A stretch of DNA of 63,845 nt, filler included, from Pelomyxa schiedti (taxonomy: Eukaryota > Protista > Evosea): assembly GCA_020536535.1 (NCBI GenBank). It is 10 parts of 10 records of this genome, joined end to end, with 100 filler letters (N's around TTAATTAATTAA, not from the genome) between each part and the next. Parts side by side here need not be neighbours in the genome. Positions count along the whole stretch, not along the records: positions 28,686 to 58,641 come from JAHLWZ010001007.1; 9 more parts are not named here. One strand, written 5' to 3'. This document shows, in pieces, positions 5,158-56,833 of this stretch. Position 1 is the stretch's first letter. The number at the start of each line of letters is the position of its first letter. The position numbers and the translations under genes are program-made. A model generated the notes under the pieces. The model searched no databases, was not told where the DNA came from, and saw nothing but the letters and a program-made list of their open reading frames with translations.

Positions 5158-5493
5158 AATTGAGGCAACTACAATGAACTTAGGAATGAATCAAAAACGA
5201 ATGAGTTAACTAGTTTTAGGATAGGTGGGGGAGGGAGGGAGGAGGGAGTTGGCGAGATACCCCCCCCTCTCCTCTCCCCCCTCCCCCCCTCCCGTCTCTC
5301 GTTGAAGTTGCTTCACATGAGGTGAGAGTGGAAGTAACAGCTCCAGGAGTGAGAATGGATGATGTCATAGCAGAAGTTCCAGAAGTTGCAGTGTATGCAG
5401 TCATAGCCCCAGAAACTGTGGCATTGGAAGTGGCAACACCAGAATTCACATTCGAGTTTGTGCATGAAGTCACATCAAAGAGGGAAGAAACAC

Positions 5494-5593
5494 NNNNNNN
5501 NNNNNNNNNNNNNNNNNNNNNNNNNNNNNNNNNNNNNTTAATTAATTAANNNNNNNNNNNNNNNNNNNNNNNNNNNNNNNNNNNNNNNNNNNN
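5494..5593. other. Artificial contig spacer; the same spacer recurs at 8463-8562, 18254-18353, 20519-20618, 28586-28685, 58642-58741, 60234-60333, 61587-61686 and 62689-62788
   Basis: Identical 100-bp N44-TTAATTAATTAA-N44 block with stops in all six frames. Plain 100-N scaffold gaps also occur at 9112-9211 and 27789-27888. Confidence 0.98.
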
Positions 5594-6282
5594 GCAGATG
5601 GGTTGTCGTTGTGGATTCAGTTTACCTGATCATGTGGAGGCTCTGGGGTGGTGGGCATTTGTTCACTGGGGAGTGCCGTGAAAGTATCAAGCTGGACAGG
5701 TCACCAGTTGGCTGCGCATTACAGGTTCAAGACCCTGATGTCATGCTCCTGGCTGCTGGGAAGCCAAATCACGATTTCAGTGGGTTTTTACTGTGGCATG
5801 TTGACCTGATCGAGAGCTTCAACCAGAGAGTTGTGTTCAAGAAGCCTCCTGTTCGTCTCCCACCTGGCCTGCACCACCACAAAACGGTTCTTGGTGGTGA
5901 CCCAATCTGCACTGTTTCAGCTTCACTTGGCAGTGACACATTCGACATCCACAACACAACCACCAACCAAACTCACCAACTTGAAGGAAGTTTCAGCCCC
6001 CTTGGCAGCAACCTCTTTGCATTGTGCATATTCACAAATGATCTCGTGTACAAGGTGTTCCACACCAGCGAGCTCCACAAGCCCTGCATTGTGCTTCCTC
6101 ACAGGAGGGGAATCCCAGGAGCCAGAGATGGCAGTGTCATGCAAGTAATCAGAATGACCTCTGGTGGGTGTGTTGTGTGGCAGTGTGCAAAAGCAGGTGG
6201 TGGATATTTGGAGAAATACGCCGTAACTGATGCTGTGTCTGACACTCTGCTTGCTTTTGTGTGTTACAACAACCTCGGCTAG
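5594..6282 (+). CDS. 3' part of a lineage-specific beta-rich multigene family member (paralog of 6413-7762)
   Basis: Shares RWVVVDS/LWHVDL, HNTTT, IPGARDGS and YAVTDA..DTLLAF with the downstream ORF. The 5' end is cut by the contig edge. Confidence 0.7.
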
Positions 6283-6412
6283 TACTCAAGCCGATTTGGC
6301 AACGGATGTAAAAAAGAAGTGCAACAGAAGGTGGGTTGTGGTGGATTCAGTCGAACTACGATTTCAGTGGGTTCCCGGGACTCAAAAAAAAAAACACTAC
6401 AGTCTGTTGACG

Positions 6413-7762: not shown

Positions 7763-8248
7763 TGTTACTGATTCTAAACTGTTTAGTACACCATCGAAAT
7801 CTTTTGTCTGTTTTTGGAAAAACAAAAGATTAACCACCCAGTATCGTTGACCTTTAGACAACACAACCACCAACCAAATTCACAAACTTGAAGGAAGCTT
7901 CAGCCCCCTTGATGGCAGCCTCTTGGCAGTGAGCACTCACTGCTGTCTCATTCTGGTAATAGTCCAGATTCGGCTCAGTCCTCAGTCTCTCCAATCCCGC
8001 TAAAGTGCACCAGACTTCAGAGCCTCGCGAGCAAGGCCAAGTTCGTGTACTTTGTGGAAGTACACAGTTGGGAGTGGACAGGGGCACCATCACTGCCTCT
8101 GCTCTGTTCTGGCCTGCCACATTGCCGGCTTAGCACATGTATTCTTTCTCAGTTCTGCTAACCACTGTAGAATCTTACATCACAGCATTCAAGGCTCGAA
8201 AAACAAAACACTTCACACAATTTTCCCCAAAGTCTCAGGAAACCCTTT

Positions 8249-8280
8249 TAACCCTAACCCTAACCCTAACCCTAACCTAA
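8249..8280 (+). repeat. Interstitial (TAACCC)n telomere-like tract
   Basis: taaccctaaccctaaccctaaccctaacctaa: four perfect units plus one degenerate unit. Confidence 0.85.
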
Positions 8281-8562
8281 GTTGAAGAAGCAAGGCTTGC
8301 TAAAAAAAGTCTATCCTGCTTTGGGTAGCCCAAAACATACCCAAAACTTTGATTGAAATCAATGATACGCAACTCATTGGGAAACGATCAAAGCAACAAC
8401 CACCACGTCGACACTCCCAAGGTGTCTCAACCACAGCAGGAGGGCCAACCAGATCCGACCTCNNNNNNNNNNNNNNNNNNNNNNNNNNNNNNNNNNNNNN
8501 NNNNNNTTAATTAATTAANNNNNNNNNNNNNNNNNNNNNNNNNNNNNNNNNNNNNNNNNNNN

Positions 8563-9111
8563 CACCACCCAGCTGTTGTTGTTTGTGCCCCTCGCGTTCG
8601 TGACTGGCGTGTCATCGGCATCACTGGGAATAACAGGTACTAACAATGCCTTCTATCACTCACATCATTGCGTTGTAGTATTAACCCCCTTAGCGCGTAA
8701 CTAACTTCATCATTTGGTTCACACACACAGCGTGGATGTTGATGGTGCCGGTGATGATGGCCAAGGGGTGGCCACTGTTCACGGTGCTGTTTGTTGTTGG
8801 GTGCATGGACTTGGTTACTGGCACTGTGATGTCTTGTGTGTATGTGGGACAGCGGTACATTTGGAAGTGCTGGGTGTGGATGTCTGTCACTGTGCTCATG
8901 CTTGCTTGTGGATCATGCCTCATTGGTGAGTGTTTATATCAGAAGAATGTGAGAATACATACATATAATGCATTAGTAGTATTCATTGTTATCTTGACAC
9001 ATTGTTTTTAGTTGGTCTATTGCATGAGTGGATTTCCAATCACTTGAGTATCTTCCAACAGGGATCTGGGGTGATTGCAATACTGTTTGGATGTGGATTT
9101 GTTGCATTTGG
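8563..9111 (+). CDS. Partial near-identical duplicate of the TauE/SafE transporter gene
   Basis: Matches ~10244-10807 almost base for base; differences are mainly small intron indels. Cut by the contig edge and an N gap. Confidence 0.8.
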
Positions 9112-9211
9112 NNNNNNNNNNNNNNNNNNNNNNNNNNNNNNNNNNNNNNNNNNNNNNNNNNNNNNNNNNNNNNNNNNNNNNNNNNNNNNNNNNNNNNNNN
9201 NNNNNNNNNNN

Positions 9212-10187: not shown

Positions 10188-11528
10188 ATGGATTACAACA
10201 ACACGTCGAGTGGAGAGTGGAGTAGCGGCAACGGCTCATGGGACACCACCCAGCTGTTGTTGTTTGTGCCCCTCGCGTTCGTGACTGGCGTGTCATCGGC
10301 ATCACTGGGAATAACAGGTACTAACAATGCCTTCTATCACTCACATCATAACGTTACGTTGTAGTATTAACCCCCTTAGCGCGTAACTAACTTCATCATT
10401 TGGTTCACACACACACACACAGCGTGGATGTTGATGGTGCCGGTGATGATGGCCAAGGGGTGGCCACTGTTCACGGTGCTGTTTGTTGTTGGGTGCATGG
10501 ACTTGGTTACTGGCACTGTGATGTCTTGCGTGTATGTGGGACAGCGGTACATTTGGAAGTGCTGGGTGTGGATGTCTGTCACTGTGCTCATGCTTGCTTG
10601 TGGATCATGCCTCATTGGTGAGTGTTGATATATCAAGAATGTAAGAATACATACATATAATGCATTCGTAGTATTCATTGTTTGTGATCTTGACACATTG
10701 TTTTTAGTTGGTCTATTGCATGAGTGGATTTCCAATCACTTGAGTATCTTCCAACAGGGATCTGGGGTGATTGCAATACTGTTTGGATGTGGATTTGTTG
10801 CATTTGGAATTATTGATATTGTCAAAACAGTGAGGAGAAAGAAGTCATTCTCAGCCAGCAGCAGTGAGCAAAATCATCTGTGCAATACGGACAGAGTTCC
10901 AAATGGTGATTGTCCTGAGAAGGATGAAGAGGAGCACTCACTGATTGTATCCGCTGTCTCTCCTCCTCTGGATCCTCAGACACAACAACTAAAGAGATTC
11001 CCAAACTCCAAATCACTTGTGGCATTCCTCTTCCAGAAGACCTTTCAAATTAATGGAATTGGAGTGGATGGCAAGCACGAACTTGATGAGGAGGTGAACT
11101 GGATAATATTGCACAAGTTCCACCCACACTGGGTTGTAATGAGGCTGCTCTACATCGTGGCTGTGTTCGTATGCTGCCTGTGTGTTGGCTATTTTGGATG
11201 GGGCAGCGGTGCATTCATAGTAATCATTCTAGGGATGCACACTGACATTGGGCTCAAGAGGGCCACAGGCAGTGGTGCAATTGTGATGGTTCTCAGCACC
11301 ATTGTGTACCTTTTCAACCTGGTTGCATGGGACTTGGTCTGCTGGACAGGTTGCATTGGCGGTGTGTGGCAGACATTGCTGTGCCTTGTGGCCACACAGA
11401 TTGCAGGCAGTGTGGTTGGCACAGTGCTGCTACTCCACATCCCAGTGACTGTTGTGAAGCTTGTCATAGGCATGGTTCTTCTCTTGGTGGGCATATTTGC
11501 CACATCATCATACTACATCATGACCTAA
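10188..11528 (+). CDS. TauE/SafE (TSUP) sulfite-exporter-like membrane protein, 2 introns
   Basis: Two hydrophobic halves, FVTGVSSASLGITAWMLMVP and VGYFGWGSGAFIVIILG...ATGSG, separated by a hydrophilic loop. GT-AG introns restore the frame. Confidence 0.7.
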
Positions 11529-11674
11529 TTCACTGGGTCCTGAGCAGTACCAAACAGGAAAACTTTTGATCGTTCAGCGAACCACTATTCCAATTTATAA
11601 TGAAATTTAATTAATTTAATTGAAAATAGTCTATTGTCATATTTTAATAGTACCACACTATTGTCACCGATATT

Positions 11675-13803
11675 ATGTCCGCAACAAGTAGTACAAGTTC
11701 TACGTCATCAACAACGACGACGAGTTCGGCTAGTAGCACCGCGACGTCGTCGGATGGAGAACACCGCATGTGTCTATTTCTTATTTCAGTAATGATGAAT
11801 TAATGAGTTGGTTGTTGTTTTGTGGTGGAGAGAATTAATTATAACACCATTAAAACAATGCTTCTCAAACTCTGCAACGATGTAGTGTTTAAGCCGATTG
11901 ACGCTGACGAGACCTCGGGTGAGGTCACAGAAATGGAGTCCCTTTGTATGAATTGTGAAGAGCAAGGTGTTACTCGTTTGCTGTTAACAAAAGTTAGTAT
12001 CCCCACTTACTGGCACAGTGCGGCAGTCTTATCTTGCATTTTTCAACAGGTGCCGTTCTTCAGAGAAATAATACTAATGGCATTCTCCTGTGAACACTGC
12101 GGATATGAAAGTACAGAGGTGCAGTACGGCGGAGAAATTCAGCCAAAGGGCGTGCGGTATACACTCAATGCAACTTCACCAAGGGTAAATTGTACTTCTT
12201 CTCTTTCCATTTCCAAGCTTGTTCAGGATTGCAATAGACAAGTTGTGAAATCTGACCTGGCTTCAATATTGATTCCGCACATAGAATTCGAAATCCCTGC
12301 AAGTACTCAAAAGGGAAGTCTCAACACAGTTGAAGGGTTCCTCACAAATGCTTCTGTTGCCCTTAACCATGATCAACCTTTGAGACGAGTATGCGATACC
12401 CTGTTCCTCACAGTGCTTAACAGTCTGAAGATAGAAAATCCTGAGGTAGCAGAGAAAATAGATGCAGTGATTCATGAACTGGAAGAGTGTGCACAAGGTG
12501 CACATCCGTTTTCATTTGTACTCGATGACCCAGCTGGAAATAGTTTTATCCAAAACCCGTAATCTACCCGCAATATTTTTTGAGACTAAAACTTGGTCTA
12601 CACAGTTCCGCTCCCGCCGAGGATCCTCAGTTACTTGTGGAACACTACACTCGATCAGAAGATCAGGATCGAGCACTATGCATTAATGTTGCTTCAAAGA
12701 AGAGTGCTGCAGAACTTGTACCTGAACACAAAAATGCATCTTCCACTATAAGTGCGCATCTGTAAATTTGGGCTATGATGCACTTTACATTCCTCTTTTA
12801 GAGGGTCTTGGTCTTCCCGGAAACCCTGAGGCTGTTGATGTTACACCTGAAGAAGTTGCCGTTATGGAGCAGCACTGTGCAATGTGCGGAGCAGTAGGCG
12901 AGCTTCGTGCAATTCTCGCAAGTAGATACCTCCTTTTTGCTGAAATTATAACTCACCCTTTACAGAAATCCCGTTCTTCAAAGAAGTCACTATCATGGCC
13001 TACACCTGCAATGAATGCGGTTACAGAACCAATGAAGTAAAGTGTGGCGGTGCCATATCTCCCAAGGGAAGGAAACTTACCCTTCAGGTAAGGGGGAAGG
13101 CTGACCTTGACCGATCCTTCTTAAAGGTAAAGCAACTCTCACAATATCAATTTTTTTTCATTTTCCGGTCTAGTCCGACACCGCATCACTCAGAATTCCG
13201 GAAGTTGATCTGGAACTAGGAGAAGGCTCTTTGGGTTAGTGTTACTTTTTTACCATCACCAAGAGTGCTCACGCTTTTCAAGGCGGGAAGTTTACCACTG
13301 TGGAAGGTATTCTCACGGACATTCTGACCCAACTTGAGAACCTCCCATTCGTCGGCGGCGACAGCGCCGAGGCTCCCACACGCGCCCGCATGCAAAGCCT
13401 GCTTGCTTCGATGAAGGAGTTCCGCGACGGAACAGCTCCGTTCACTCTTATTGTGGATGACCCTCTCGCCAACAGTCACATCCAGAGGCTCGACGTTGAT
13501 GACTCGGAGCCGTCTTCGTCTTCGTCATCATCAACAACAGAACCCACATCGGCTACTCCTTCCACCACAGTGGTATCACGAGACTCCAATTTCGAGGTGA
13601 TAGACTATGAGCGGTCCATGGATCAGAATGACAGGCTGGGGCTTCTTGACATGAACACTGAGAACTACACCAACAACCCCGCGACTGACACCGCGTCGCA
13701 CCAACCAGATACCGCGGCCACCACGGTATCTGCCTCAGCAACCACACAGCAATCAACAACCGCTAGCAGTACCACAACAACACCAGGCCAGCATCATGAA
13801 TGA
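11675..13803 (+). CDS. ZPR1: Zinc finger protein ZPR1 (multi-exon)
   Basis: Two ZPR1 modules: ESLCMNC...PFFREIILMAFSCEHCGY...TVEG...LDDPAGNSFI and CAMCG...IPFFKEV...CNECGYRTNEVK...GKFTTVEG...DDPLANS. Confidence 0.95.
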
Positions 13804-34392: not shown

Positions 34393-36013
34393 ATGGGTGG
34401 GACTGTTTCCAAAGACAGCAACAAATGGGACAGCGATGGACCACAAAGGGCATTAGATCTAAGTACCTACGCCGCAACGTCGACAAGTGATGAATATGTA
34501 CGGGGATGTGGTAGTTGCGATGGATGCGTCGCTCAACAGGCGGCGCGACAGGATTGTGGGTTTACAGAGAGCGGCGCCGAAGCGGTGATTCTACGCGACG
34601 AACGAACAAAGGGAGAAAAAGTTGGCTCTGAGGGTGCCAAAGATGGTGTTGGTGCTTTGAGGACTGACTGGTTTGTACTGGTGAACACGAAAAGTGGTGG
34701 GAGGCACGTTGGGCACAGACTGCTTGTCAAGTTTGCCAAAGTTCTTCCAAGCAACCAGGTATTTCGGAGCAGTTGCTTTTGTTTTTAATTCGTGTGTGCA
34801 GGGGAAACACTTCGTGTATTAAAAATTAATAAGTTAACTTCAACGAAAAGTTGTCCTACAGGAGACTCTTTCTCACACTGTGTAGGTTTGTAACCTTGCA
34901 GAGTATGGCAGCCTGGAAGGCATTTTGCCTCTCATACAGAGAACTCCAAATGCCAAAGTACTTATCGCTGGGGGGAATGGAACGTCTCAAACTGTTATGA
35001 CGGCACTGGAACACCTTGATGGGCGGAACGGCGTTACCGTTGGTCTTGTGCCAATTGGTGTGGGGAACGACCTCGGACGAGTCTTTGGGTGGCTTGGTGC
35101 TGCAAAGTTAGACAATGCTGTAGATATTCTGCATCTTTTGGATGGTGCACAGCTTCAAATGTTGGACAGGTGGCAAGTATCAAGTGTTTCACATGTATCT
35201 GGTAAAGCTCAAACTATTTTGAAGAAGTCTAATACGGACTCTAGCAAAATTGGATACTATCCTGTCTTCATTTACTGCCCAAAACTTGAACTCCAGCAGT
35301 AATCCTGTGAATCAGGATTGCAATGAAGTTCGAGGTTACACAATGAGCAACTACTTCACTATAGGACCTGATGCCCGTGTAATTAAACTCTTTGACTCAT
35401 GGCGTAGTCGGCATCCCTCTTTATTCTTCAGCCGCCGTATAAACATGTGCATGTACTTCTTGTTTGGGTTTGGTGTTGCACTCTCGCATAAAATACCCCC
35501 GCTGAGAGAATATGCTTCTATTTTCCTTGATGACTCTCCATCCCCACTTGCACTTCCTTCCAACGTGTGCGGAATCATTGTATCCAATCTCCCTTCAATC
35601 TTTGGAGGAATAAAACCGTGGGGAAAATGGGATGATTCCTCCACTGGCACCACATTCAGTTATGAGGTAATACTCCCTTCTCAATTGCCAACCGATTCTC
35701 TAACACATAAAAGCCAGTGTGTGATGATGGCTTGTTTGAAATCACTGGAATCAACAATGTATGGCATCTGGGCAAACTTCTTCTTGGATCCCAAGCAGTG
35801 CGACTAGGACAGGCAAGGAAAATGCGGATAGTAACAACCACCCCCACCGACGCCCAGATTGACGGAGAGCCTGTGCCACTTCCGCCATCAGTTACCACTA
35901 TCAGCCATAAATCACAACAAAGGCTTCTCTACCGGCCTCACACCATATCCAACAGGGTTTGCCCCAGTGGTGCCTTACCCACCCTCCTACTACAATCTTC
36001 ATCCAGCACATAG
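34393..36013 (+). CDS. Diacylglycerol kinase family protein (DAGKc plus DAGKa), MGxxxS start
   Basis: LVNTKSGG, IAGGNGT, PIGVGNDLGR, LDRW, NYFTIGPDA, DDGLFEI, QIDGEP. Confidence 0.9.
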
Positions 36014-42446: not shown

Positions 42447-45400
42447 TATCACAAGTGGCTGGGGTGTTGTACTGTGAAACTCTTTCCAAGAGAAGACAAG
42501 CGGGTGGGTAGGCGCATGCCAAGAAGCCCAGCTGGGACTGTCCCCAGTGTAGTGGAGGACTGCCTCTGGCTGGGAAGAACTGCATAGATGTGTGATGTGA
42601 CAGTGATTAGATACAGGAACGAGTGAAATGGGTTGTGGACAAACTTTGTAGGTTGAGGGACTTCAGGGCGGGATTCTGCTGGATGGCGATAATTAGTGCT
42701 TGGGTTCCAGTGTTTCCGATGTTATTTTCTAGGTGAGAACACCGTGTTTTACGGGTTTTTAACGAACGAGAGAGAGAAAGTACAAACTTGATAGATTGAG
42801 GTAAATGCATGGTGATGATGGCTGATCTGCAGTTAAAATCGGTGCTTTGAAAATGTTAGGCAGGTAAATGGAGGGAACATACAAAATACTGTGGTTGGCA
42901 CAGTTCTTTGAAGTTCTCTGGCGATTGCTTCCGCTGAATTTTCATACTCGTTATCTGTATGTTGTTGATACAGATTTCTTACAAAGCGAACTACATGCTA
43001 CGGTAACATCTAGTATTTGTTGCGACTTGATCAGTTCGGCAAGTGCTTGTGCTCCAGCATCATTAATACCATTCTCTGCGTTTTTAGATTATTATGATGT
43101 ATATAGTCAAAAGAAAGAAGTATGTGAACCAGAACAGTCGAGATGGAAAGCTTTGTCAACAAAACAGGGTTCTTTGCCAACTTTTTCTTCAAAGAAATTA
43201 AAAACAGAAAAATTAATAATTATAACCAAAATACCAAAAACATTAATTCTAGGGATCACAGATTTTGCCAATTGGGTAATGATGTCTGGGCTACCAATTG
43301 GATTACCTGCAGAAACTCAGAAAGGAATTTTTTTTTGATGAAGTTGTTACCAGAAAGGATAATTTTTATACAAGGTATAATTTGCAGAGCTTGGAGGAGA
43401 TACCGTAGTCCATCAGATTCGATGTTATTGGCTGAGGGCAATGAGTGAGATTTTTGGAAAAAGAGTAACCTCTGAGATCTATGTTTGACAAGGTAGTGTT
43501 CTCTTTAAGGTATTTGGATAGAGCTTGGGCACCAAAAGGACCGATGCTATTTTCTGTACGCTATTATTTACTGCCTCAAATTATTTCCCACTCCATACGT
43601 TTCAAGTCAAGGATTCGCAGTGACGAGTTATGTGATAGTGCGTGCCCAACTGCAGTGGCACCAAGGTCCCCAATGTTATTTACTAAACAAAGTAACATAT
43701 CGATTACATGTTATCGTTATTTTTTACCTCCTAAATGAAGTTCTCTGATAACGTTGTTGACTGCAAGTGTCTCAGCAATAAATGAACAGGCTGAACCTTG
43801 AAGAGTCCCTTGAAAAAAATTATTGGTTTTTAGGTGGCTAACTTCGAACCTTCCATTTTCAAAACAACTACTCCCAAATTCGATTTCAAGGCTTCAGCAA
43901 TAACTTTCCCTCCAGGTTCCAAGATTTTGTTATCTGCAGATGTGTAAATACTTAATAGCAACAGTACATAGGATAAAAAAGTACAAGAAATATCTATCTC
44001 GGTGATTGTGGAATTCTGTACAAGTACTTCAGCAATCGACTGTGCCCCTTCAGCACTAAATAAATTCTCTGGAGTCCTGTTAGTTCTGAGAAAATCAAAA
44101 AGCCAACCTCTTAAGTTGAGATTTCTAATAGACACGTTTTTTCGCAATGCTTTAGCAATTGGTTTTGTACCTTCATCTCCAATTTTATTCACTACCAAGG
44201 AGTAAATATTTCATTCTCAATTGGAAACTACCAGAAAGGTTAAGATCTGTTATAGAGGAAGTCCTTTTAAGTGCTTTTGCAATGGTGAAGGCACCAGAAT
44301 CACCCAAATATCCTACTATACTTATAATATAAGCTGGCTGTAGATTCTTGGATACTTACATTCATTGACAACAAGGCTCATCAAGGCATTGAAGGCTGTT
44401 TGCTGAAATTGAGTCGAATTGGGGTATGTTTTAGTTGAGGAGAGCAGATATTCCACAGCGCCGTTTTGTAAAAGATACAGTCGGTTCGCTACCATGCTTA
44501 AGAGTCATGGATTTTAAGACTAACCAACATTTCTCTTTTCCAATGACCCCAAGTGCCGAGGCTGCACTTTCGCACGCTTCAAGTGACAAATTGATATGTT
44601 CTTTAAGTGTTAAAAGCACTGCTGAAACTCCACCAATTTCTCCGATGAATCTCTTGTCTATTAAGATTGGAGTGAATAGGAAAAACGGTTGAGGTACTCT
44701 GATATGACTGTGCTGCTTTTGTTAGTGCTTTGCAGGCCGAAATTGCAACTGGCTCAAGGTGAAAAAAAGACTGCAATTTTTCAATTATTGCTCTTAAGGA
44801 GTCCTGTGTTCCAATTTCATTTTCAAAGTTGCATTTCACACCTAACAGACATTAAAGAGCCGATACATGGAAAGGGGTACCTTCGACTACACCCTTTAGG
44901 ATTGAAGGGCAGTGTTGCATTTCCATCTCAACCACAATGAAGCCCGCGGTGAGTACGCTCACTATATGAAATTCAACCCATGGTTCTAGTAGTATCTCTG
45001 AGGAAGACTAAGTAATGAAACAAGGGGGAAAAAAAACCTTGGTTCCCTGGAGAAAATGAGAAAGGTTGAATATTGTAGCCCCAACAATTGCGAATAACAA
45101 ATAAGGTACCAGAGGTTTCGCTCAGCAGTTGTTTGGTGCTGCTAATGTCTGTCGTGGTTGATGTGAAACAGTGCCATGTGAGAGTTTGGCCCACAGATAT
45201 CTCGGAAGTGGGGAGCCGCCTGGTTACTCCTCTATACAAGACACAATTGTGCCCAACTCTGGGTAACTTTCGAAGGGCTAATAGGAGAAGATAAAGAAGT
45301 CCACGAACACTTCTAATCTTTTCCTTATTTCGTTCCTGAAGGCATTGATTTAATAGAGTCGATGGATTCTTGGAGACCAATTCAGGAGAAGCTGGCGCGA

Positions 45401-48400
45401 GTCAGGGTTTAATGAGAAATAAGAACATACAGAATTCATATGTATATACAATCAATCCAAGGGCATCCTCAAGTGAGAGGAAACAACTTTCTTGGAAGTG
45501 TTTTGGAAGGATATTCTTGAGAAACTGAGTACAGGATTGAAGTACAAGCTCAATCTGCGGAATTCCCGCCTCTGTCAGAGCTTCCAGCAGAGTGGGCTTG
45601 GTGTAAATCGGTTCAAATAGCCTACATGATATAAACAGACCAGAAAAGGTGATAATCCACAATACGTGGAAAATTCACAGGCCGTATTGAGTTTCTGGCT
45701 ATTTTCTTCTAATAATTCACTTGGAGTGCTATTATTAGGCACTGTACTATCAATAGGGGGCTTGTCATCCAAATTTCTGCACTGCATTAACATACAATAG
45801 AAGGGGAAAAAAAGAACGTGGGAGTGCTATCACTAAAGTCAAGAGTAAGCCGACTTGGCATACTTTCGAAGGATTCATTCCTGGAAGGAGTGAACCTGAG
45901 GTTGGTTTAGTGAGAAATATATCCCTCTCAAGTGCCATACTGAGTTTGTGATACATCATTGGACAAATCGTCAGTGAACCGGGATGATGTAAAGGTGGTT
46001 CCATCTACAGAAACAGGTCCATTTATTGTCGTATGTGTTGCCGTTTGTTCCAGTAATGGAGCTTCATCGCCTGTGATCTGTTCCGCAAGTGTATCATGTT
46101 CCTTGGTTGGTATAGGCTCCACATCCAAAGAGAGCAACCCATTTGTTGTAACTTTATATTGATCAATTCCAGAATAGTGATATCTTCCTACCATCAAGAA
46201 TTACTGTCGAGTAAGGGTGGGATTGGAGTGCGGTGAAAATAGATTCTCGACCAGCAGATCCAATCAGGTTACCTGGTAATTGGTAGGTTTACTCATGGAA
46301 AAAGTACAGCACACAAGATAAATTCATTTTAACACCTCCCTTCCTTCCAAGTACTGCTGCAATTTCCTTGGCAGCGGAGTCACCAATCTTATTACCTATG
46401 GATATGAGAGGTGGCAGGAATACTCATATTAAGCTACCAGACAGGTTCACATCATGGAGTGTACCATTACACTGTAACATTTCGGTGAAAGAACAAGCAA
46501 CATCATCAATTTCATTGACTAAAGCGGTGGGTTGAAAAAGAAAAAAAGGAAATATACCAGAAAGGTCTAGTTCTGTGAGACTTGTGTTTAGTTTAAGGGC
46601 TTCAAAAATTTCCTGTGCCCCTTTTGACCCAATATGATTTGCTTTTTCCCATTTGGTTAAAGGATAATGGTGCATATACATTGTGGTACCTTGGAGGCTT
46701 AGGCTTGTAAGTGATTGGCTAGTTTTCAAGGAATTGGAGAGTACAGAAGCACCTGCATCTTGTATTTTATTTCCTAGGTTTTTTTTATTTTTTTTTTTAG
46801 AAATAAGAGGGGAAGTGAATAAAATAGTGTGGAAAACCAGAGAGATTAAGGTGAACAACTTTGCACAATATTTCCGCAATTGCTGGTGCGCCTTCAGGTC
46901 CCATACCGTTTCCTAGAGGAAAAACAAATCACAATTAAACACTGCACTTTATCAAGGGTACTTTACCAGAGAGATTAACTGTTTTCAGACGACTTTTATT
47001 GTGAAAAGCACAAGCAATTGAGAAAGCACATTCATCACCAATCAGTTCGCTTTGCTTTTTATTATCTGTATGCCCTAAATTTTTTGTACATCATTGCATT
47101 CCCATACACATAAAATTTAGTTCTTGAATAACTGTATTAAGACTGAGAGCTTGTTCGATATAAAACATAATCATTCCATCACAGAAAATTCCTTGAGAGT
47201 GTAAGTAACGGAAGAAGATGTTGACCTAACCATTCAATGCTACTTTGGTTATAGAGTGATGCAATTTCAATGCATCAAAGAGAACTCTAGCTGCACTGTC
47301 ACTCAGTTTAATATCTTTTTGGTGAACATTGAGAAAAAGTATTTAAAGGTCGAAACAACTTTCAAGATTAAACTCGGTAATTGCAGAGTTTAGCTTAAGT
47401 GATTCCGAAATAGTAACTGCATCCGAGTCAGATATCTCCCCATCTTATGAACAATGAATCTCATTGGGAATACTTCTCATTACCTTCTCTTACTGCCATA
47501 GTTATAAGGGTGTTGAATGCAGTTTGTTGAAGAAGAGGTTGGCTCATGTGTTTTTTCATTGCTTCAAATACAATTTCTGAACCATGGCGTCGGGAAATTT
47601 GGGTCCGATTCTCTACTCCCACCAGTTAAATGTGATTTTGGGACCAAAGTTTTAACCTTTAGTCTTAGCAAGTATACCCAGCACTATACATACATACTCA
47701 CAAACTTGTGGTAATTCATTGTGCTCCTTGAGTGTAGAAACAACCACATCTGTCCCACCATGCGCACTTATTATCCTCCTATCTTCCCCAAAATATTAGA
47801 GATGAGGCATAAACATTTTCAAATAACTTGTATCTGATTGGGCAATCTTGGCCAATGCATCCAAGGCAGATAAGGCTACACTTTCAAAATGGGAGAAAAA
47901 CTTCAGCTTCGTGATTACTGATGTGATAGATTCAGGATCTTGTCTTGAGATTTCGGATTGAAATTTGTACTGGAAGTCTAGTTCAGTTAGTGGTAAAGAG
48001 AGAACAGTTGAACTATGCCTCCAATTATGTTGTGAAGAAGCATTGGGCAGGTACACATTTCAAGTTCAATTATGATAAAATAAGAATCCAGAACACTGGC
48101 AACCTGGAATTCAATCCCGGGTTCCAATAAGATCTCTTTACAAATGATAAATACAGCTAAATTAGAGACAGCAATTAACCTCTTTCACCCGGCAGGTAGG
48201 AAAAGGGTTGGACATCATAACCCCAACAGTTTCGAAGAACAAAGAGGGTACCAAAACCAGTTGAGGGAGAACATATAAATTGCTTTGTAGTTCCCATATC
48301 AGTGGTAGTTGATGTAAATCCATGCCATATGAGGGTCTTCCCAACAGGATAATCACACAAGTTGACCTGCTTTGTAATTCCTCTGTAAAGCACAACATCC

Positions 48401-49770: not shown

Positions 49771-51556
49771 TCACCACGATAAACAATTTGTTACCGGTGG
49801 CGTGGCCGCTTTCAGAGCAGCAGCTTTCTCCTCAGCCGTCTCCTTGCAATACCAGCAGTTAGGGTCCCCAGAGAAAATCGAGCCCCTCATGGCATAGGCA
49901 ACCCCGCGGCACCCTCCGCACTGGTGCAGCCTCGAGCACCTCCCACAATTGCCCTGGAAGTTGTCCCGCGAGCGCAGGTGCTGCATATCCTCGCACTCCC
50001 AGGCCTTGTGCAGAGCCTGCAGGAAGTCTCCGCCGCATTCCTCAGAGTGCAGGTTGCCCACGACGTAGCCCATGCGGCGGCAAGCGAGGATGTCTCCGTT
50101 CTGAATGACACAAATGCCATTCTTGCCAACGCTGCACCCGCAGTTGTGTTCAAATGCCAGTTGCATCCAAAGAGGGTCCTTGGTGACAAACTGTGTCTGA
50201 GTTCCGTATTTGTCCTCTGGGAGGAAAGTGGTGAGTGCTGGATAGTGACTTGCTTTTTTTTTGAAAAGGTTTTTTTTTCTCTTACCTAGAGCGCTTAGAA
50301 GGAGATAAGCCTGCTCGAGCTCATCTGGCCGGAGAACATCTTCTTCCAGTGCTTCACCTGTTCCCATGGGCACTAGCCTGCCCACAGCAAATCGCGTTAC
50401 TTCATGGGCCACGCATAGCTGAACAATTTGTTCTAACTCAGCCACATTCTAGTTGGGCATTAGAGAATGAGGCGATCAACTATGAAGGAGACTTTTCTGC
50501 TTAAAGTGAGCATAACGGCTGTTGTAATTCCAACCACGCGGGCAATGTCAAGTGCTTCAATTGCCCTTTTGAAGGCTCCTGGTCCCCGGAATGAATCATG
50601 AGTTGCCTCTACTCCATCTATGCTTACCTAAAGAGTAATTAAACCCCCGCAAGAAAAAAAAACATGCAGCACTTGTAGAACACCAATTCTCGCATCAAAT
50701 AACTTCAGGGCCAGAGGAATTGTTAACATGGTTCCGTTAGATAGAACTCTCGGGAAGATTCTAAGCTTGCGAGCTTGGCGTATGTAGTCACACAACTGTG
50801 GTTCCAGCAGAGGCTCTATAGGGCCCTAGGATTAGGAGCTTATTCAAATTCCCTCCCCAGTACCAAATTACCTCCGCCAGTATAATAGATAGTTCCGTCA
50901 CAATCCATTTCCTTCAGAAAAGCACTGAACGCCAAAAGTAGTTTGGTGACATCACCAGGAGTCATTGACATTCCTCCCCTCTTGCTCTCCTGATAGCAAT
51001 GTGTGCACCTCAAATTACACGTGTCCGTCAAATGCAACTGCAAAAAGAACTGCTTCCTTCGAAGCACAGGTCGCTGCCGCCTTCCCATAACTGAGTTGGC
51101 CACGCTCGAGTGCCCTCTGCAGCTGTGGTCGTGATGGTGATGGTGGTGGTGATGAGGCCCATCGCTCCCATCACCAACCAAACGGTCGTGCTTGTGACAC
51201 GCGCACGAGCAATCTTCCTCGGAGACTACCGGGGGAGTAGCCGTTGTCCTGAGTTGGAATGAATTGTGGGAGCTTGTGCTTGTGTCCTTTCCTGTGCCAG
51301 AGCTTGAACTCCCCGTCGTACTACTAGTAGCAGAAGTCGTAGTCGTAGTAGTCGTCGTTGAGACAGAAGGTTGTAGAGGCCTCCCGGTGGTTCGTATCAC
51401 GAAGGGGTCGTCCAGAGTGGGCTGGGCGTCGGCCTCGTCCCCGCTGCTGGGGCACTCGCATTCGCACTCACAGGCGCCGTCACACTCGCTCTGTATTTCG
51501 TCGTCATCGCCGTCTACGTTGTGTTCATCCGCGAAAATAGTGCCTTCGTCGCACAT
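49771..51556 (-). CDS. Radical SAM/SPASM domain protein with a Cys-rich and His-rich N-terminal extension
   Basis: QLHLTDTCNLRCTHCY (Cx3Cx2C), YTGG|EPLL split by an intron, LSNGT, VSIDG and HDSFRGPGAF; SPASM GCSVG...GDILAC...VGNL...CGRCSRLHQCGGCRGVAYA...GDPNCW. Confidence 0.92.
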
Positions 51557-51940
51557 TGTTTTGTTTTGTGTGTTTTGTTTGTTGTTCTGGCATCTGAAAA
51601 GTCTGGTGCTGTGATCATCGGGAATTTCTCAAGAATCCACATTGTTCACATCAGCCAGGTTTCTTGCTAGTTCAGGCAACACTATTGATTATAGCTCCTG
51701 CCCCGTGCTGATGCCTGCCCTAAAATTCTGTGTAATCCACACACAAAGGTGAACAGAACTGTATGCACACTTGGGTTCCAGGCACACATTATACTGGCAA
51801 ACTCAGCAAAACACACAATTTTCACCCTGGACCCATTCCCTTGCTTTGATTTCCGCAATAATGGACCAAATATCTTTTCGATTAGTTAATTCAAGTTACC
51901 GGAAACCAATCTCAAAGGACCGGCCCCCGCACTGCTTTTA

Positions 51941-54867
51941 GGGGGGGGTCCAAGGAGTACGGAAAATAATTGCAAAAAAACACAAATAATTTCGAATTTT
52001 TGTAAAGGACTTATTGTTTTGCCCTTCAAAAAAAATTGATTTTGTATTTAAAAGGAGCCGCTTGTGGCGTTGGCATTTTACAAAAAAAAAACACGTTAAC
52101 ACCACCCCTTTTACAGAGTTTATTTGTGGCTGTAACCAAAGCTGGCATCTGTGGCTTTTACTTCGATTCACACCCCTCCACAGGAGGGACAGTCAGGAAT
52201 TACCTTGCACTGGTATTGTGACTTGTGGCTAGTGGATACATTGGCACAGTGCCCCCGAACCATGCACGAGAGTCACCTCACAACCCAGTGCACAAGCCTT
52301 GACTTATCTGTTGAAACTGGCGTTGGTGTGTAGACAACACACAATTCTGGTGGTTCTTGTGCTTGTTGTTGGCCCTTCGGAGGGTTTCAGTGGAAGTTTC
52401 CAAGAAAGAAAACTGATGGTCGATGTAAACGGACTCAGGAAGGAGGTACTTTTACAAGCCTTTCACACACAGAGAACTTGGGCAAGCAACACTCAATTGA
52501 AACAAAATCCACAACCTTCAACACAATAAATCAACTTTTGGTTTTTTTTTCCTTTCGGGTTGATCATGTGGTGGTACAAACCGAACGAATGGAAAGTTTA
52601 GGCAGTTGTGGGCGGTTGTACGTTCCTGCAAAACGGTCAAGCAGGAACTGCCGGAAAAACACACTCCTTTTTGTTAATTTCAGTTCGGGTTGGTTGTGAG
52701 GCCTTTGCACGCCAATGGTGTGTTGTTTTGCAGTGTGCTGTTTACAATTGGTTTGCAAACCAAAAGGATATAGGACTCTTACTCGAATTTGTCTGGTTCT
52801 GATGGTTCTTTGTACTCTCAACCCCCTTTTGTTGATTTCTTGACGCCACAAGCACAACACCTACCAATGCAACAACTACAACAACAAGTGCCATCACAAT
52901 CACAACTACCGTTATTGCAAATGCAACCATCACCTCCCCAGTCAGAGCCGCAACAGCTACAACACATACAGCAACTACAACCACAACTTCCACAGCCACA
53001 ACAAACACTACTGCAACAGCAGCAACTACTACCACCATCCCAACAACAGTTACAGCTTCTTCTGCAACCACCACAGTCCTTTCAACAAGGAGTTCTTCCT
53101 CCTTGTTCGTTTGCATCCACAACATATCCAGCAGTCCCACAGGCCTTCACAATGGGTCCACCTGCAATGGTGCCCTACAATGACCTTCTGCAGCTTTGTG
53201 TGGTCTGGTTTAAGTAGGTTTTTTTTTCCCCTTTCTAACCAGCTATCAGAGTTTACAAAGACAGTTGGCAAGCCAGCCAACCCAATTCTTTAAAGAGTGA
53301 TACTGACCTTGCTTGAGCACTGGTACCCCTGTATCACGGTTGTGTGTAAGGTATGGAATGACTGAGAGCCAAGGATTAGGGGCAGTGCAACGAGTCCGGC
53401 CATACATCCATCGTGAACTTTGCCAGTATTGGGACCGTCCCTTCATCCACAAAGTGGATCCAGAAGACCGATTTTCATACATCGCTGTGGTTGGAGACCA
53501 CACACCAATCATGATTAACAGACCCTATTGCCCTACCAATTCATTTGCGTATGGAAAGCAGGTACACACTTTCAAAAGTATTTCATAACTTTTTAAAAAT
53601 CGACTGCACAGACATATGATAAACACCATGGCATGTATGCTCTTAAAAAACATGTTGTTGTTTCAGCCACTTCACCCTATTACGCTGTGGCATGGAATTG
53701 TGCCAGTGAAGGCTCATGCCATGATATGAAAGATCTGATCTTAACATGGCAAAACATGTACCCCCATTTATTGGCAAAAAAACCTGAGGATGCCCATCTT
53801 TTCCCTCAGCAGCCCACATGGGCAGTGTTGTTGGATAGCGGCTATGTAGGACCAGAGCCTTATGGGTATGCCAGCTTGCCTTTTTCGTGAGATCTAACAT
53901 TCCCCAAGTTTAAATAAAGTGGTTATACCGAAGCCTTCAAGCCGGACCACATTTAGTTCTCAAGATGTGAGTGACCTAAAGAAAAAAAGGTCTGACTTCC
54001 TCCCAGTCACCTCATCTTGTCTTACAAACCTCAGAGTTATTGTTGAATGCTTTTTCGGGAGAATGACTGTACTATGGAGGTGCCTACTCTCACCTTATCT
54101 TTTTGATAAGGCCTATTTGGACATGGATGTTGAAAATATGATTATGTTGACTAACTCACACATCGAGTAGTTTTTCCGCTATTTGCCGCTTACTTATTGA
54201 ACACAGAGAACATCAGAAAAAAGAGCCTTTGGGCCCAAGTGATGCCAAGAAATATGTGGACTTTGTAAACCTGTGGAAGCAAGCACAATCTAAAGACAAG
54301 GAGATATATGCAAGAAAAAATGCAAAGGCAAAAGAATCAGCAAGTAAAAAGGCTCGTGTGCTTGCACAATATACTACAGAAGCTTCCTCTGATCTTCCAC
54401 CATACATCCTAACTCCATGGCGACACCCACAACCCTCATTATTACCACCACAAAACCAGCAGCAGCAACCTCTGTCCCTCCAACCAACTTCACCACCACA
54501 AAACCAGCAACAGCAACCATCAATGCCAGGAGTGCCACAGCAGCATGGACAGACACGGACACAACCTGCAGTTCTGGAACAACCAATTCCCAACCAACTG
54601 TCCCAGAGCACAGATACTCATACACCATGAGGTAAAAACCCCTCAATACCCAAAACAACAAAAAAAAAAAAATAACTTACAGCACAAACAGACACAACTG
54701 AACACTGGGATGGAATAACACACAAGGAAGCTGCAAACACCTGGCAAAGAACCACGACGCAGCACCAACTTGTAAATAATGAAATTTCTGTTAATTCGAA
54801 GTTTCATAGAAATTTCCTTTTTTTTTGTCCACTGCTAGTGGTATGCCACTAGGAGTTGATCCCCCCC
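51941..54867 (+). mobile_element. Putative PIF/Harbinger-type DNA transposon (boundaries tentative)
   Basis: Contains a DDE transposase. Possible short imperfect TIRs are GGGGGGGGTCCAA after TTA and TTGATCCCCCCC; the right-hand TSD does not match. Confidence 0.45.
52789..54630 (+). CDS. PIF/Harbinger DDE transposase with introns and Gln/Pro-rich ends, possibly disrupted near 53290-53312
   Basis: HTH LSTGTPVSRLCVRYGMTES and the triad VGDHT / WAVLLDSGY / RVIVECFFGR. Confidence 0.85.
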
Positions 54868-55150: not shown

Positions 55151-56833
55151 ATGATCAGTGTGATGTCTGTCAGTTTATTCTTCCGGCAGAGACCTGTGCA
55201 AAAACGACCGAACAAAAGAACCCCCCTTGTGGACCCTCCCAAGAAACCAATAAAATCAAAACCATGTCGATGTATTGGTGTATTGGCGGCTGTGTTTATC
55301 ACTACACTGTTTCTGCTTGCAGAGTACCTTTCCTCAAGGTGCGATTCCTTCACAACTAAATGAAAATAATTTTCGATCTTTATAAGGCCGGCCTACATAC
55401 CTGCCCCAGCTGAATTTCCAAGTGCAAGTGTGCCCATTCAAGGGAGAGACTCCACAGTTTCCGTTAATATCGATCTCAATCTCTTCTCGCTGGTTGTACC
55501 ACGCTATCTAGACAATTGGTTGAATGAGGGTGACTGGAGCTTTCACTATTTGCTGAAAAGTGATGGGTCTCCCCAGGGAACAACAGTGGAAATAGTACAC
55601 TTCAGTGGCAAGGACGGACATATCCACCTTGACAATGGGCATGCCAGCTGCATTGTGAGTGGTGTGTCCTCTCCCAATCCAGGCACTGTCAAAGTGGACA
55701 TCTCTTTTTGGGGGGCAGTGAAATTAAGAAGGAGGGTTGTTACTTCACTCGAGAAAACGAGCGATTTTGCAGGCACGTTATCTTGCACTGTTCCAATCAG
55801 CCTCACAAATGACTGGCATATTATTAGCAATCCATCAGTGCAAGTGTCAGTAATCCGAGCCAAAACATTTTTTGGGTGGTCATGGGAGCCACGGCTTAGA
55901 GCTGGGATGGAAAAAATTTTAATCCCAAAAGTGAGCTTATAATTCAATCCTTTCTGCTGACTCAAAATCCAGATTTTGGAACTGGTGTCACAAGTCCCCA
56001 GTTTATGTGAGAAATTTAACTTGATGTGGCAACATCTCCATGACGCTATGCTGATACCCACCGTGGAGCTGCAAGACTATAAAGTTGAAGATGTGTGGCT
56101 GCAAATAAATCCAAACGCATTGTCTATGTCTCCACTCACATTCGCTGGAGAGTGGATGCATGTGTCAATTGGCCTTTCCTGTAAACCGGTAATTTCAGTT
56201 GGTTATTATCCAGCCTCAAGCTCTCCTACGATGGAGTGCCCAAGCTTCTCCACCATGATCGCTGATCAGGGAATTGATACAGAACTGACATTCCATCTTC
56301 CTTTCACTGTATTAAACACGGAAACATTGAGACTTCCACCGACAGTAATCACAATTTGGGGAGTACAAGTAGAAGTAAAATCTGTGCAGTTTTACGCATC
56401 AGAGAGAACTCTTGTTGCTGCAGTGGTGACACAGAGCATATTTGGCAATGCCACGATTTATTTATGGGGCGAATTACAATGGAACTCAACGAACAGTACA
56501 CTTTCTTTTTCAGTTGTCGACTTCCACCCAGAACCTCGGAACTACCTCTCAAAGATGGCTTTGTTCACTGCTGATTGGTTGTTCCATGGCCATGTAAAGG
56601 AGCTTATCTCACGCAAACTACATTGGAACCTTGGTGCACACCTTGAAAACCTCCGGCAGTATATCAGAGACAGCCACAGATCTGACCACTGGGCGGACTA
56701 CAATTTTGTGATGCAGACATTGGATATTCAGAGTGTTGTTGCTGAGGCCTCTGGAATCACTCTTGTAGGTTCCCTCACTGGCCAAGGTTCAGTTTCTGTC
56801 AAGTCTGACCTAAAACTGACTGACTTAACATAA
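55151..56833 (+). CDS. DUF4403-like (bacterial-type) protein with an N-terminal membrane anchor, 2 introns
   Basis: Hydrophobic anchor then DSTVSVNIDL...WQHLHD...WLQINP...ATIYLWG.L.WNST..TL...DF...RNYL..TADWLFHG, resembling the recalled DUF4403 pattern. Confidence 0.65.

Follow-up and report, generated by a model that had tools for sequence, protein, structure and literature searches.

Pelomyxa schiedti carries, in its nuclear genome, a spliced gene for a radical SAM/SPASM protein that is likely to be a functional cytosolic enzyme of Asgard archaeal descent, drawn from a family that forms a two-gene module in prokaryotes and probably modifies Cys-rich segments. A membrane protein with a Cys-repeat tail is encoded next to the enzyme in archaea and anaerobic bacteria. 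In the amoeba, the substrate is probably not the enzyme's own N-terminal Cys-rich extension.

The gene lies on the minus strand of the window, the whole stretch of 63,845 nucleotides (filler included) that we analysed. Its five exons give a coding sequence of 1572 nt, from an ATG at 51556 to a TGA at 49773-49771, that specifies 523 amino acids (Table 1). A search of representative proteins returned an identical P. schiedti sequence, P0122 (NCBI KAH3743251.1); full-length analyses used this database record, and the exon pieces were also searched singly. None of the top NCBIfam matches backs the name under which the protein was deposited, "7,8-dihydro-6-hydroxymethylpterin dimethyltransferase". 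Introns 3 and 4 are precisely spliced out in single-cell RNA contigs; intron 4 is in frame and stop-free, so that a mechanical open reading frame runs straight through it. In the run X1 contig, the A-run at the junction is one A too long, probably through a homopolymer error. Homology is continuous across introns 1 and 2, and the one known eukaryotic ortholog has introns at both same places. No contig among the single-cell RNA contigs covers exons 1 and 2, so that these data give no direct RNA proof that the N-terminal extension is transcribed. An earlier, sequence-only reading of this DNA had described a spliced gene with a CDGACECECEC element ahead of the catalytic domain; its coordinates for both were reproduced exactly.

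Table 1. Features of the radical SAM/SPASM gene, numbered along the window.
Feature	Position	Strand	Detail
Whole gene, radical SAM/SPASM protein, deposited as KAH3743251.1	49771..51556	-	5 exons, 523 aa
Exons	51556-50872, 50815-50673, 50627-50493, 50448-50286, 50216-49771	-	GT..AG at every intron
Intron 3, RNA-confirmed	50449..50492	-	44 nt skipped by run X1 contig
Intron 4, RNA-confirmed	50217..50285	-	69 nt skipped by contigs of runs X2 and X3
Eukaryote-specific N-terminal extension, aa 1-165, predicted disordered	51062..51556	-	pLDDT <50, residues 1-152
Cys cluster 1, CDGACECECEC (aa 25-35), the "core" of the sequence-only reading	51452..51484	-	Cys spacings 4, 2, 2, 2
Thr/Ser-rich low-complexity linker (about aa 60-107)	51236..51379	-	sequence composition
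Cys cluster 2 and His run, CSCACHKHD ... H8 ... C (aa 116-146)	51119..51211	-	sequence
Met156, archaeal start-codon position	51089..51091	-	alignment; 13 aa before FFLQLH
CX3CX2C radical SAM cluster motif (C180, C184, C187)	50996..51019	-	invariant columns; Pfam and NCBIfam matches
SPASM auxiliary-cluster Cys: C403 ... G-x4-C421, C466-x2-C-x5-C-x2-C478, C496	49855..50142	-	pLDDT >90
8-aa insertion SEECGGDF, common only to the two eukaryotic orthologs	50023..50046	-	alignment A2
C-terminal tripeptide L-S-W	49774..49782	-	fits CIA targeting motif [LIM]-[DES]-[WF]-COOH

The cluster motifs of the catalytic domain are intact. The CX3CX2C motif is accompanied by GGEP (residues 227-230) on invariant columns, as in the radical SAM superfamily PF04055, and the seven Cys residues of a SPASM domain (PF13186), which serve two auxiliary 4Fe-4S clusters, are present as C403, G416-x4-C421, C466-x2-C469-x5-C475-x2-C478 and C496. 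All of these Cys residues, C180, C184 and C187 included, and the GGEP motif occupy invariant or near-invariant columns of the family, and the earlier description of an intact CX3CX2C and a full SPASM motif thus holds at every Cys. The Pfam score for SPASM was weak with the last exon alone; full-length NCBIfam alignments cross the SPASM region. AlphaFold modeled residues 160-516, the partial TIM barrel included, with pLDDT >90. The top Foldseek matches of this model were peptide-modifying enzymes, namely sacti-/ranthipeptide maturases and related SPASM or twitch maturases: SkfB (6efn), CteB (5wgg/5why), SuiB (5v1s/5v1q/5v1t), anSME (4k36-4k39) and PqqE (6c8v), which have the same fold and cluster layout (E values of 1e-13 to 1e-18) but share only 15-22% identity with the amoeba protein and have other substrates and other genomic contexts.

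The amoeba protein passes none of the NCBIfam cutoffs. Its best model is TIGR04340, the ACGX-system radical SAM enzyme, which it matches at 179.7 bits; the cutoff of 400 is reached by no member of its clade. TIGR04340 is itself an uncharacterised predicted maturase of Cys-repeat peptides, and the resemblance spans the whole model (residues 169-497 aligned with profile positions 2-338), extending to a single-domain layout, a predicted Cys-repeat partner and the lack of an RRE, which had been noted before, was borne out here and is shared with anSME. The two differ, however, in that the score is below the cutoff and in that neither the extension nor the prokaryotic partners gave any match to ACGX-repeat peptide models; no adjacent ACGX-repeat peptide was present within the window. 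The second-best model was SbtM (TIGR04082), a thio(seleno)oxazole-forming radical SAM maturase, at 130.2 bits over profile positions 195-515 only. SbtM is the top model for the bacterial tail-associated members, acts on Cys and forms a product class that is also that of MNIO enzymes related to those associated with TIGR04222 tails. Scores for SbtM nevertheless lay between 130 and 206 bits, below the cutoff of 350, and its N-terminal domain of about 190 amino acids is unmatched here. By its place in the tree, the amoeba enzyme belongs to a clade of Cys-repeat-tail-associated radical SAM/SPASM enzymes of Asgard archaea and anaerobic bacteria.

In the Asgard clade and its relatives, the gene directly upstream of the enzyme encodes a DUF2207/TIGR04222-like membrane protein with a C-terminal tail of the form (Cys-Gly/Ser-Gly/Ser)n, usually ending in ...CGGCGG. 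Such a gene was found at 34 loci, compared with 12 of 10,073 background ORF ends, and at all seven Asgard-clade loci that have upstream DNA; the tail detector as finally set takes in Asgard loci L003, L005, L006 and L086 and the Magnetobacterium group. Of the 263 intervals between Cys residues in the tails, 203 have a spacing of 3, and CGG-COOH forms the terminus of 33 of the 48 tails. The sequence-only reading had asked whether the closest prokaryotic homologs neighbour Cys-rich peptide genes; Cys-rich candidates are indeed present, as tails of the protein encoded upstream. Conservation of the module is limited to these two genes. Given that the partners are mostly membrane proteins of 280-630 amino acids (with weak matches to TIGR04222, PF09972 and PF20990) and that the module includes neither protease nor exporter, the label "RiPP", applied earlier to the amoeba system, is a loose one. 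The tail partner is sometimes merely a membrane-anchored peptide. An independent proposal makes the Cys tails of TIGR04222 proteins the substrates of Cys-modifying enzymes of the MNIO type (PMC12452194), and the tails on the prokaryotic partners here are of the same kind. That pairing, however, involves an oxygen-dependent MNIO, whereas the enzyme encoded beside the tail protein here is of the radical SAM/SPASM type, belongs to anaerobes and does not depend on oxygen. The open literature that we searched contained no description of an association between such tails and radical SAM/SPASM enzymes, and searches on ACGX, on DUF2207 with radical SAM and on SPASM in protists returned nothing on the gene or the module.

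Peptide-type models as best matches, together with Cys-tail neighbours, support the earlier proposal of a Cys-directed peptide or protein maturase. In such an enzyme, SAM would be reductively cleaved at the CX3CX2C cluster, and the 5'-deoxyadenosyl radical, with two auxiliary clusters, would yield modified Cys, or modified adjacent residues, in a flexible Cys-rich segment. For the archaea and anaerobic bacteria, in which the enzyme is encoded directly downstream of the membrane protein, the tail is predicted to be cytoplasmic. The formation of Cys-derived heterocycles of the SbtM thiooxazole type is the leading candidate for the chemistry, somewhat short of an even chance; thioether crosslinks are a plausible second, and some other reaction is rather improbable.

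Just two eukaryotic sequences of this family were found among 1.8 billion representatives, that of P. schiedti and an ortholog from an uncultured eukaryote (locus L002), which we assessed from exon ORFs and the fragment P0001 with the exons unjoined. Scans of JGI metagenomes gave no further eukaryotic orthologs, the single-protein scan being empty and the alignment scan returning prokaryotic loci only. The two orthologs share three intron positions, the 8-amino acid insertion, an N-terminal MCDE and an SCxC motif located 17-50 amino acids ahead of the catalytic domain. At the other end of the protein, the ortholog terminates in TDW, and archaeal homologs in the alignment have no C-terminal extension. 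A C-terminal [LIM]-[DES]-[WF]-COOH tripeptide is described for clients of the cytosolic Fe-S assembly (CIA) targeting complex (PMC10245660), and the amoeba enzyme may use the CIA machinery by way of its predicted LSW tag. The three shared introns, the shared insertion and the LSW tail have the appearance of signs of domestication in a eukaryote. In the explanation that we favour, the introns, the LSW tag and the disordered N-terminal extension, which holds two Cys clusters and a His run, would all have been gained by the gene in the amoeba.

Archaeal homologs begin about 16 amino acids ahead of the first strand in the alignment. Met156 aligns with their start codon and is probably the ancestral start, in which case all sequence 5' of it would be a later addition. 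The frame of the extension is open over 165 codons, and stops interrupt both alternative frames here, 3 in one and 7 in the other. An independent second DNA assembly, which spans the whole gene, differs within the extension by two synonymous changes, one L102P substitution and one in-frame Ser codon, and by nothing else; three of these four differences fall within the Thr/Ser linker, the Ser insertion is at codon 39, and the sole indel seen between the two assemblies is thus in frame. Similarity to the ortholog is weak in this region (shuffle p of 0.05-0.28), the best match being that of PVVSEEDCSCAC, from the region of Cys cluster 2, with PEISENEHSSCGC (shuffle p of about 0.05). In the one ortholog compared, the N-terminus keeps MCDE and the proximal SCxC motif but few of the other Cys residues, and it has no His run.

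The sequence-only reading had proposed that this N-terminal segment is the enzyme's own substrate, in which case the 3' end of an upstream tail gene would have become fused to the maturase, as in borosins. We regard this explanation as the strongest rival, and as unlikely. In donor lineages, no more than 52-190 nt separate the end of the tail from the codons for CX3CX2C on the same strand, so that loss of one stop codon would fuse the two genes, and an in-frame fusion of tail and enzyme occurs naturally in P0248 (metagenomic locus L083, one contig). With Met156 at the ancestral start, the extension occupies the very position expected of a fused tail, and the N-terminus bears Cys in both eukaryotic orthologs. 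A separate partner was also not found: the window holds no upstream same-strand gene ending in a (C-x-x)n tail, and a homology search of limited sensitivity with the Asgard tail protein matched only archaeal and bacterial hypothetical proteins, and none from a eukaryote. Two Cys-dense minus-strand frames (52821-53081 and 54216-54617), considered as a separate precursor, were rejected as the antisense of Gln-rich plus-strand ORFs.

Against self-modification, the amoeba motifs are acidic and N-terminal with a Cys spacing of 2, whereas the tails mostly have a spacing of 3 and a CGG-COOH end, and no sequence similarity between the N-terminal segment and the tail proteins was detectable. For the check suggested earlier, conservation of the core in related protists, a single ortholog was at hand: CDGACECECEC is absent from L002, the one other eukaryotic sequence, and the N-terminal match to that ortholog is otherwise weak. 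The Cys segments were predicted by AlphaFold to be disordered and undocked in the full amoeba protein as well as in residues 470-851 of the natural fusion P0248, a result that is uninformative about docking, and the Thr and His runs resemble ordinary amoebozoan low-complexity growth. With this Cys spacing, an ortholog that lacks the core and no docking in the models, the proposal as it was originally made is not supported. Borosins of the OphMA type offer the concept of a maturase bearing its own core peptide, and P0248 is such a fusion; they are, however, SAM methyltransferases with a C-terminal substrate, and self-modification in the amoeba system is hypothetical. The fuller scenario, in which the Asgard module entered the amoeba as a fusion and the enzyme retains an N-terminal substrate remnant that it modifies in cis, is less probable still. 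With regard to the substrate in the amoeba, another Cys-rich protein modified in trans approaches an even chance, the enzyme's own N-terminal Cys motifs in cis appear a minority prospect, and other possibilities make up the rest.

The extension might instead be a metal-binding or regulatory appendage on an enzyme that acts in trans, which we consider improbable. The extension has metallothionein-like CxC repeats and eight consecutive His residues, both of them typical metal ligands; an N-terminal Met-Cys can form an oxygen-sensitive Cys2 N-degron, and both eukaryotes keep the Met-Cys-Asp-Glu start on an enzyme that requires three oxygen-labile clusters. The extension, however, has no homology to any metal-binding family, and in the ortholog the His run is missing, as are most Cys residues.

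As to origin, the two eukaryotic sequences paired with support of 100/99 in the maximum-likelihood tree and were nested within a 17-row Asgard clade (100/99), in accord with the prokaryotic source and anaerobic eukaryotic host proposed in the sequence-only reading. The gene most likely descends from an Asgard archaeal gene through lateral transfer into an ancestor of the amoeba and one related uncultured eukaryote, with the direction of transfer probably from archaeon to eukaryote. Vertical inheritance from the Asgard ancestor of eukaryotes followed by near-universal loss is an improbable alternative. The order within the Asgard clade is unsettled (78/42), with the eukaryotes inside or beside Loki/Hod/Sigyn sequences, and oxygen-sensitive enzymes are readily lost in aerobes; on the other hand, the Asgard sequence P0017 branches below the eukaryotes, and the family is confined to two eukaryotic sequences among the representatives, with none in the JGI metagenomes. 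Lateral transfer and vertical descent are not rigorously separable with just two eukaryotic sequences known.

That the protein is a tetrapyrrole cofactor enzyme of the AhbC/AhbD/NirJ kind with an incidental extension is very improbable. Such enzymes share with it one broad SPASM subgroup, and their models gave moderate scores of 96-127 bits (NirJ2, 127; AhbD, 124); the NirJ2 and AhbD models are just 50-55 bits lower than the best one, so that non-peptide chemistry is still conceivable by sequence score, and for a sister clade that lacks tails the top match, below threshold, is AhbD. All of these scores are nonetheless far under the cutoffs of 500-650, the amoeba gene has no heme-gene context, and the conserved neighbour in prokaryotes is a Cys-tail protein rather than a heme gene. 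In the tree, which included named NirJ, NirJ1 and AhbC sequences and left out PQQ enzymes, bona fide AhbD and bona fide NirJ2, the named sequences formed a separate, distant outgroup clade (support of 100). The nesting among heme or PQQ enzymes that would have spoken against a peptide maturase was thus not seen for NirJ and AhbC, and the PqqE model, whose cutoff is 381, reached only 77 bits. Symbiont contamination or an assembly chimera is effectively refuted: Pelomyxa does host archaeal and bacterial endosymbionts (PMC10579272), but the gene has four spliceosomal introns (two confirmed by RNA), shares three intron positions with a second eukaryotic contig that also bears Sec6 and radial-spoke genes, is flanked by eukaryotic genes and is spanned by the independent assembly.

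The preferred reading, of an Asgard-derived enzyme that modifies Cys-rich segments, has implications for both the amoeba and the enzyme family. SPASM-type radical SAM maturases are, to our knowledge, a prokaryotic speciality, and here the nuclear genome of a eukaryote encodes a SPASM enzyme whose gene has introns, whose C-terminus bears a putative eukaryotic Fe-S delivery tag and whose nearest relatives are Asgard sequences. It would represent a clean case of gene flow from an archaeon to a protist or, less likely, an Asgard relic. The pairing of a (CGG)n-tail membrane protein with a dedicated radical SAM/SPASM enzyme is widespread in anaerobes, and we found no description of it; it supplies a concrete candidate substrate for an uncharacterised enzyme clade and may do without oxygen what the MNIO/TIGR04222 pairing does with it. 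If modification in cis were true, the principle of an enzyme that carries its substrate would extend from borosins to radical chemistry; and if the fusion reading were true, the amoeba would be the first eukaryote with a radical SAM/SPASM system that modifies peptides, and that system would also be the first autocatalytic one among eukaryotes.

The radical SAM gene of the window comprises five exons on the minus strand (Table), and all of its introns are of the GT..AG type. An exhaustive representative search retrieved a 523-aa protein, P0122 (NCBI KAH3743251.1, automatically named 7,8-dihydro-6-hydroxymethylpterin dimethyltransferase), whose length equals the gene model exactly and which matches the query stretch at 100% identity. 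Its source, Pelomyxa schiedti, is a free-living anaerobic archamoeba. Full-length analyses rest on P0122, with the exons having been searched singly. Introns 3 and 4 are confirmed because single-cell RNA-seq contigs of the Pelomyxa study skip exactly those stretches, and the spliced gene that the sequence-only reading placed at 49771–51556 was borne out. In one of the RNA contigs the A-run where exons 3 and 4 meet is longer by one A, which probably reflects a homopolymer error, and none of these contigs reached exons 1 and 2. The gene is covered in full by a second DNA assembly, and the only differences in the extension (residues 1–165) are a pair of synonymous changes, L102P and a single in-frame Ser codon. 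The 165-codon extension frame is open, and the other two frames contain three and seven stops. The TTGTT/TGTTTTGTG microsatellite that abuts the ATG differs in length by 9 nt in the second assembly. The Pelomyxa genome paper does not mention the radical SAM gene.

Features of the radical SAM gene, its surroundings and homologous loci
Feature	Contig	Position	Strand
Exon 1	window	51556-50872	minus
Exon 2	window	50815-50673	minus
Exon 3	window	50627-50493	minus
Intron 3	window	50449-50492	minus
Exon 4	window	50448-50286	minus
Intron 4	window	50217-50285	minus
Exon 5	window	50216-49771	minus
Extension part 1: acidic start, MCDE...	window		
Extension part 2: Cys cluster 1, CDGACECECEC	window	51452-51484	minus
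Extension part 3: Thr/Ser run	window		
Extension part 4: Cys cluster 2, CSCACHKHD, then eight histidines	window		
5' UTR microsatellite	window	51557-51583	
Gln/Pro-rich open frames	window	52789-53217; 54229-54630	plus
Antisense Cys-dense frame (rejected)	window	52821-53081	minus
Putative DUF4403-related gene (ORFs 55430-55942, 55976-56833)	window	55430-56833	plus
Diacylglycerol kinase accessory domain ORF	window	35250-35807	plus
LRR_6-type gene	window	43369-46912	minus
LRR_6-type gene	L002 (ortholog)	10560-11746	minus
Extra ortholog intron	L002	9248-9292	plus
Tandem Cys-tail paralogs	L001 (Asgard clade)	4362-9155	plus
Small downstream peptide	L103	2221-2373	plus
Small downstream peptide	L112	2342-2527	plus
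Small downstream peptide	L113	6311-6463	plus

An AlphaFold model of the full protein showed a confident radical SAM/SPASM fold at residues 160–516 (pLDDT mostly >90) and disorder at residues 1–152; the top structural matches in Foldseek were SkfB, PqqE, BlsE, SuiB, CteB and anSME. In a 43-sequence family alignment, C180, C184 and C187, GGEP and all SPASM cysteines occupied invariant or near-invariant columns. The intact Cx3Cx2C and full SPASM motif, the exact position of CDGACECECEC and the lack of an RRE in the amoeba protein were all read correctly from the sequence. Met156 aligned with the start position of archaeal homologs, 13 residues ahead of the FFLQLH strand, and these homologs end immediately past the last SPASM cysteine.

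The best NCBIfam model for P0122 was ACGX-system rSAM TIGR04340 (179.7 bits versus a cutoff of 400), followed by SbtM (130), NirJ2 (127) and AhbD (124); no member of the wider clade passed the NCBIfam cutoffs. The Asgard-clade protein P0002, with 39% identity over the C-terminal query stretch, served as proxy for the homolog search. Its closest full-length homologs were from Promethearchaeota (Loki), Hodarchaeota, Sigynarchaeum, Odin, Thor and Njord, and the next, after Asgard, from Anaerolineae, Nitrospirota, Spirochaetia, Elusimicrobia and others. A quick tree of 99 rows and a careful tree of 64 rows (LG+C20 PMSF; most tail-less Dehalococcoidia and Nitrospirota rows left out) agreed in picture: the amoeba sequence and a fragment from a second eukaryote formed a pair (support 100/99) inside a 17-row Asgard clade (100/99), which upholds the proposed prokaryotic origin of the catalytic domain. 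An AhbC/AhbD/NirJ-like cofactor enzyme had been offered as an alternative and appears improbable: the named NirJ, NirJ1 and AhbC sequences were a distant outgroup in both trees, whose rows comprised no curated AhbD, NirJ2 or PQQ enzyme (PqqE). The sub-threshold AhbD and NirJ2 model scores speak for this alternative.

The second eukaryote provided the only other eukaryotic sequence among 1.8 billion representatives, and two metagenome scans yielded no further eukaryotic orthologs. Its 333-kb ENA contig also encodes Sec6, radial-spoke and RRM genes. The ortholog has introns at amoeba positions 1, 2 and 4, and both eukaryotic proteins share an 8-residue insertion, missing from all archaeal sequences, and a C-terminal extension with a terminal Trp. 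Pelomyxa intron 3 is missing in the ortholog, and Pelomyxa is missing an extra 45-nt in-frame ortholog intron within CX3CX2C, between CNLR and CAHCY. The ortholog frame also begins MCDE, with only ~36 residues ahead of the first strand, among them SSCGC, which aligned best to amoeba PVVSEEDCSCAC (shuffle p ~0.05); its N-terminus contains no CDGACECECEC core, Thr run or His run. Given MCDE and SSCGC in the ortholog, a short Cys-bearing N-terminus would be old in the eukaryotic lineage, and given that CDGACECECEC is absent there, the flagged core would be Pelomyxa-specific, not being retained in the sole ortholog. The C-terminal residues are L-S-W in the amoeba protein and T-D-W in its ortholog. 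The motif [LIM]-[DES]-[WF]-COOH is described as a mark by which the targeting complex of cytosolic Fe-S assembly knows its clients (PMC10245660); the L-S-W end may be read as an adaptation to eukaryotic cluster delivery and would support a cytosolic, active enzyme.

An LRR_6-type leucine-rich-repeat gene adjoins the radical SAM gene on both eukaryotic contigs, in differing relative orientation, a weak, repeat-driven sign of shared locus ancestry. Elsewhere in the window, a diacylglycerol kinase accessory domain (E 3e-19) marks an ORF as an ordinary eukaryotic gene and so confirms that the contig has a nuclear context. Two ORFs resemble exons of a single gene, the second matching DUF4403 (E 1e-28), a domain known mainly from bacteria; they may represent another gene of prokaryotic origin, lying ~4 kb from that of the radical SAM enzyme.

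Immediately upstream of the P0002 gene (L001, a contig of assembly GCA_040961035.1) are three tandem paralogs of a membrane protein (593, 634 and 300 aa), each with a (CGG)n end. They precede a single maturase, a member of the Asgard clade in the tree, so that several substrates may share one enzyme. Such a tail gene, defined as a same-strand ORF with its stop 52–190 nt before the CX3CX2C codons of the enzyme and a Cys/Gly/Ser repeat at its end, was present at 34 of the fetched loci versus 12 of 10,073 other ORF ends, so that the proposed check whether the closest prokaryotic homologs neighbour Cys-rich genes gave a positive answer. All Asgard-clade loci having upstream DNA had one (L001, L003, L004, L005, L006, L085 and L086), and no locus of a large sister clade (Dehalococcoidia, Nitrospirota, Deltaproteobacteria) did. 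The top model was SbtM for tail-associated bacterial members and AhbD, sub-threshold, for the tail-less sister clade. Of 263 intervals between tail cysteines, 203 had a spacing of three, and CGG was the end of 33 of the 48 tails. Partner proteins were mostly 280–630 aa, with weak matches to DUF2207 and TIGR04222, a few being membrane-anchored peptides of 53–57 aa; since basic residues follow the last hydrophobic segment, the tail is predicted to be cytoplasmic. Only the tail and enzyme genes were conserved in the neighbourhood, which has no protease or exporter. In a 2025 survey, oxygen-dependent MNIO enzymes were proposed to act on the Cys tails of TIGR04222 proteins, and a third of genomes with such genes were noted to have no MNIOs (PMC12452194); our literature searches found no papers linking these tails to radical SAM enzymes. 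Distant homologs at L103, L112 and L113 have a different small downstream peptide ending in ...FCVQCSGCHGCR, probably a separate Cys-rich RiPP family.

Modification of the extension in cis, as a self-substrate fused to its own enzyme, appears rather doubtful. The amoeba motif is unlike the family tails in spacing, charge and position, its core is not conserved, and it shows no similarity to tail proteins, even though the donor gene order puts a fusion one stop codon away and one metagenomic contig (L083) encodes such a tail–enzyme fusion (P0248, 851 aa, in frame: partner, Cys repeat and enzyme). The ancestral Met retained at position 156 also favours a cis substrate, as does the failure to find a separate partner in the window or, in a search of limited sensitivity, the protein database. 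In AlphaFold models of P0122 and of P0248 residues 470–851 the Cys segments came out disordered and undocked, which is uninformative here. Antisense to open frames rich in Gln and Pro, the window reads as very Cys-dense peptides; these antisense frames, one of them with 11 Cys in 20 aa, mimic a precursor gene and were rejected.

Two hints point to Cys-derived heterocycles as possible products of this family: for part of the clade, no characterised enzyme is a closer relative than SbtM, and similar tails pair elsewhere with MNIO enzymes, close relatives of which make thiooxazoles. The fold and sactipeptide relatives would point equally well to thioether crosslinks. The origin, enzyme class and Cys-peptide link of the sequence-only interpretation thus stand, but self-modification stays putative. 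The amoeba gene adds a new, eukaryotic variant to an enzyme kind already known, and it led to a substrate–enzyme module of which we found no description in the literature searched.
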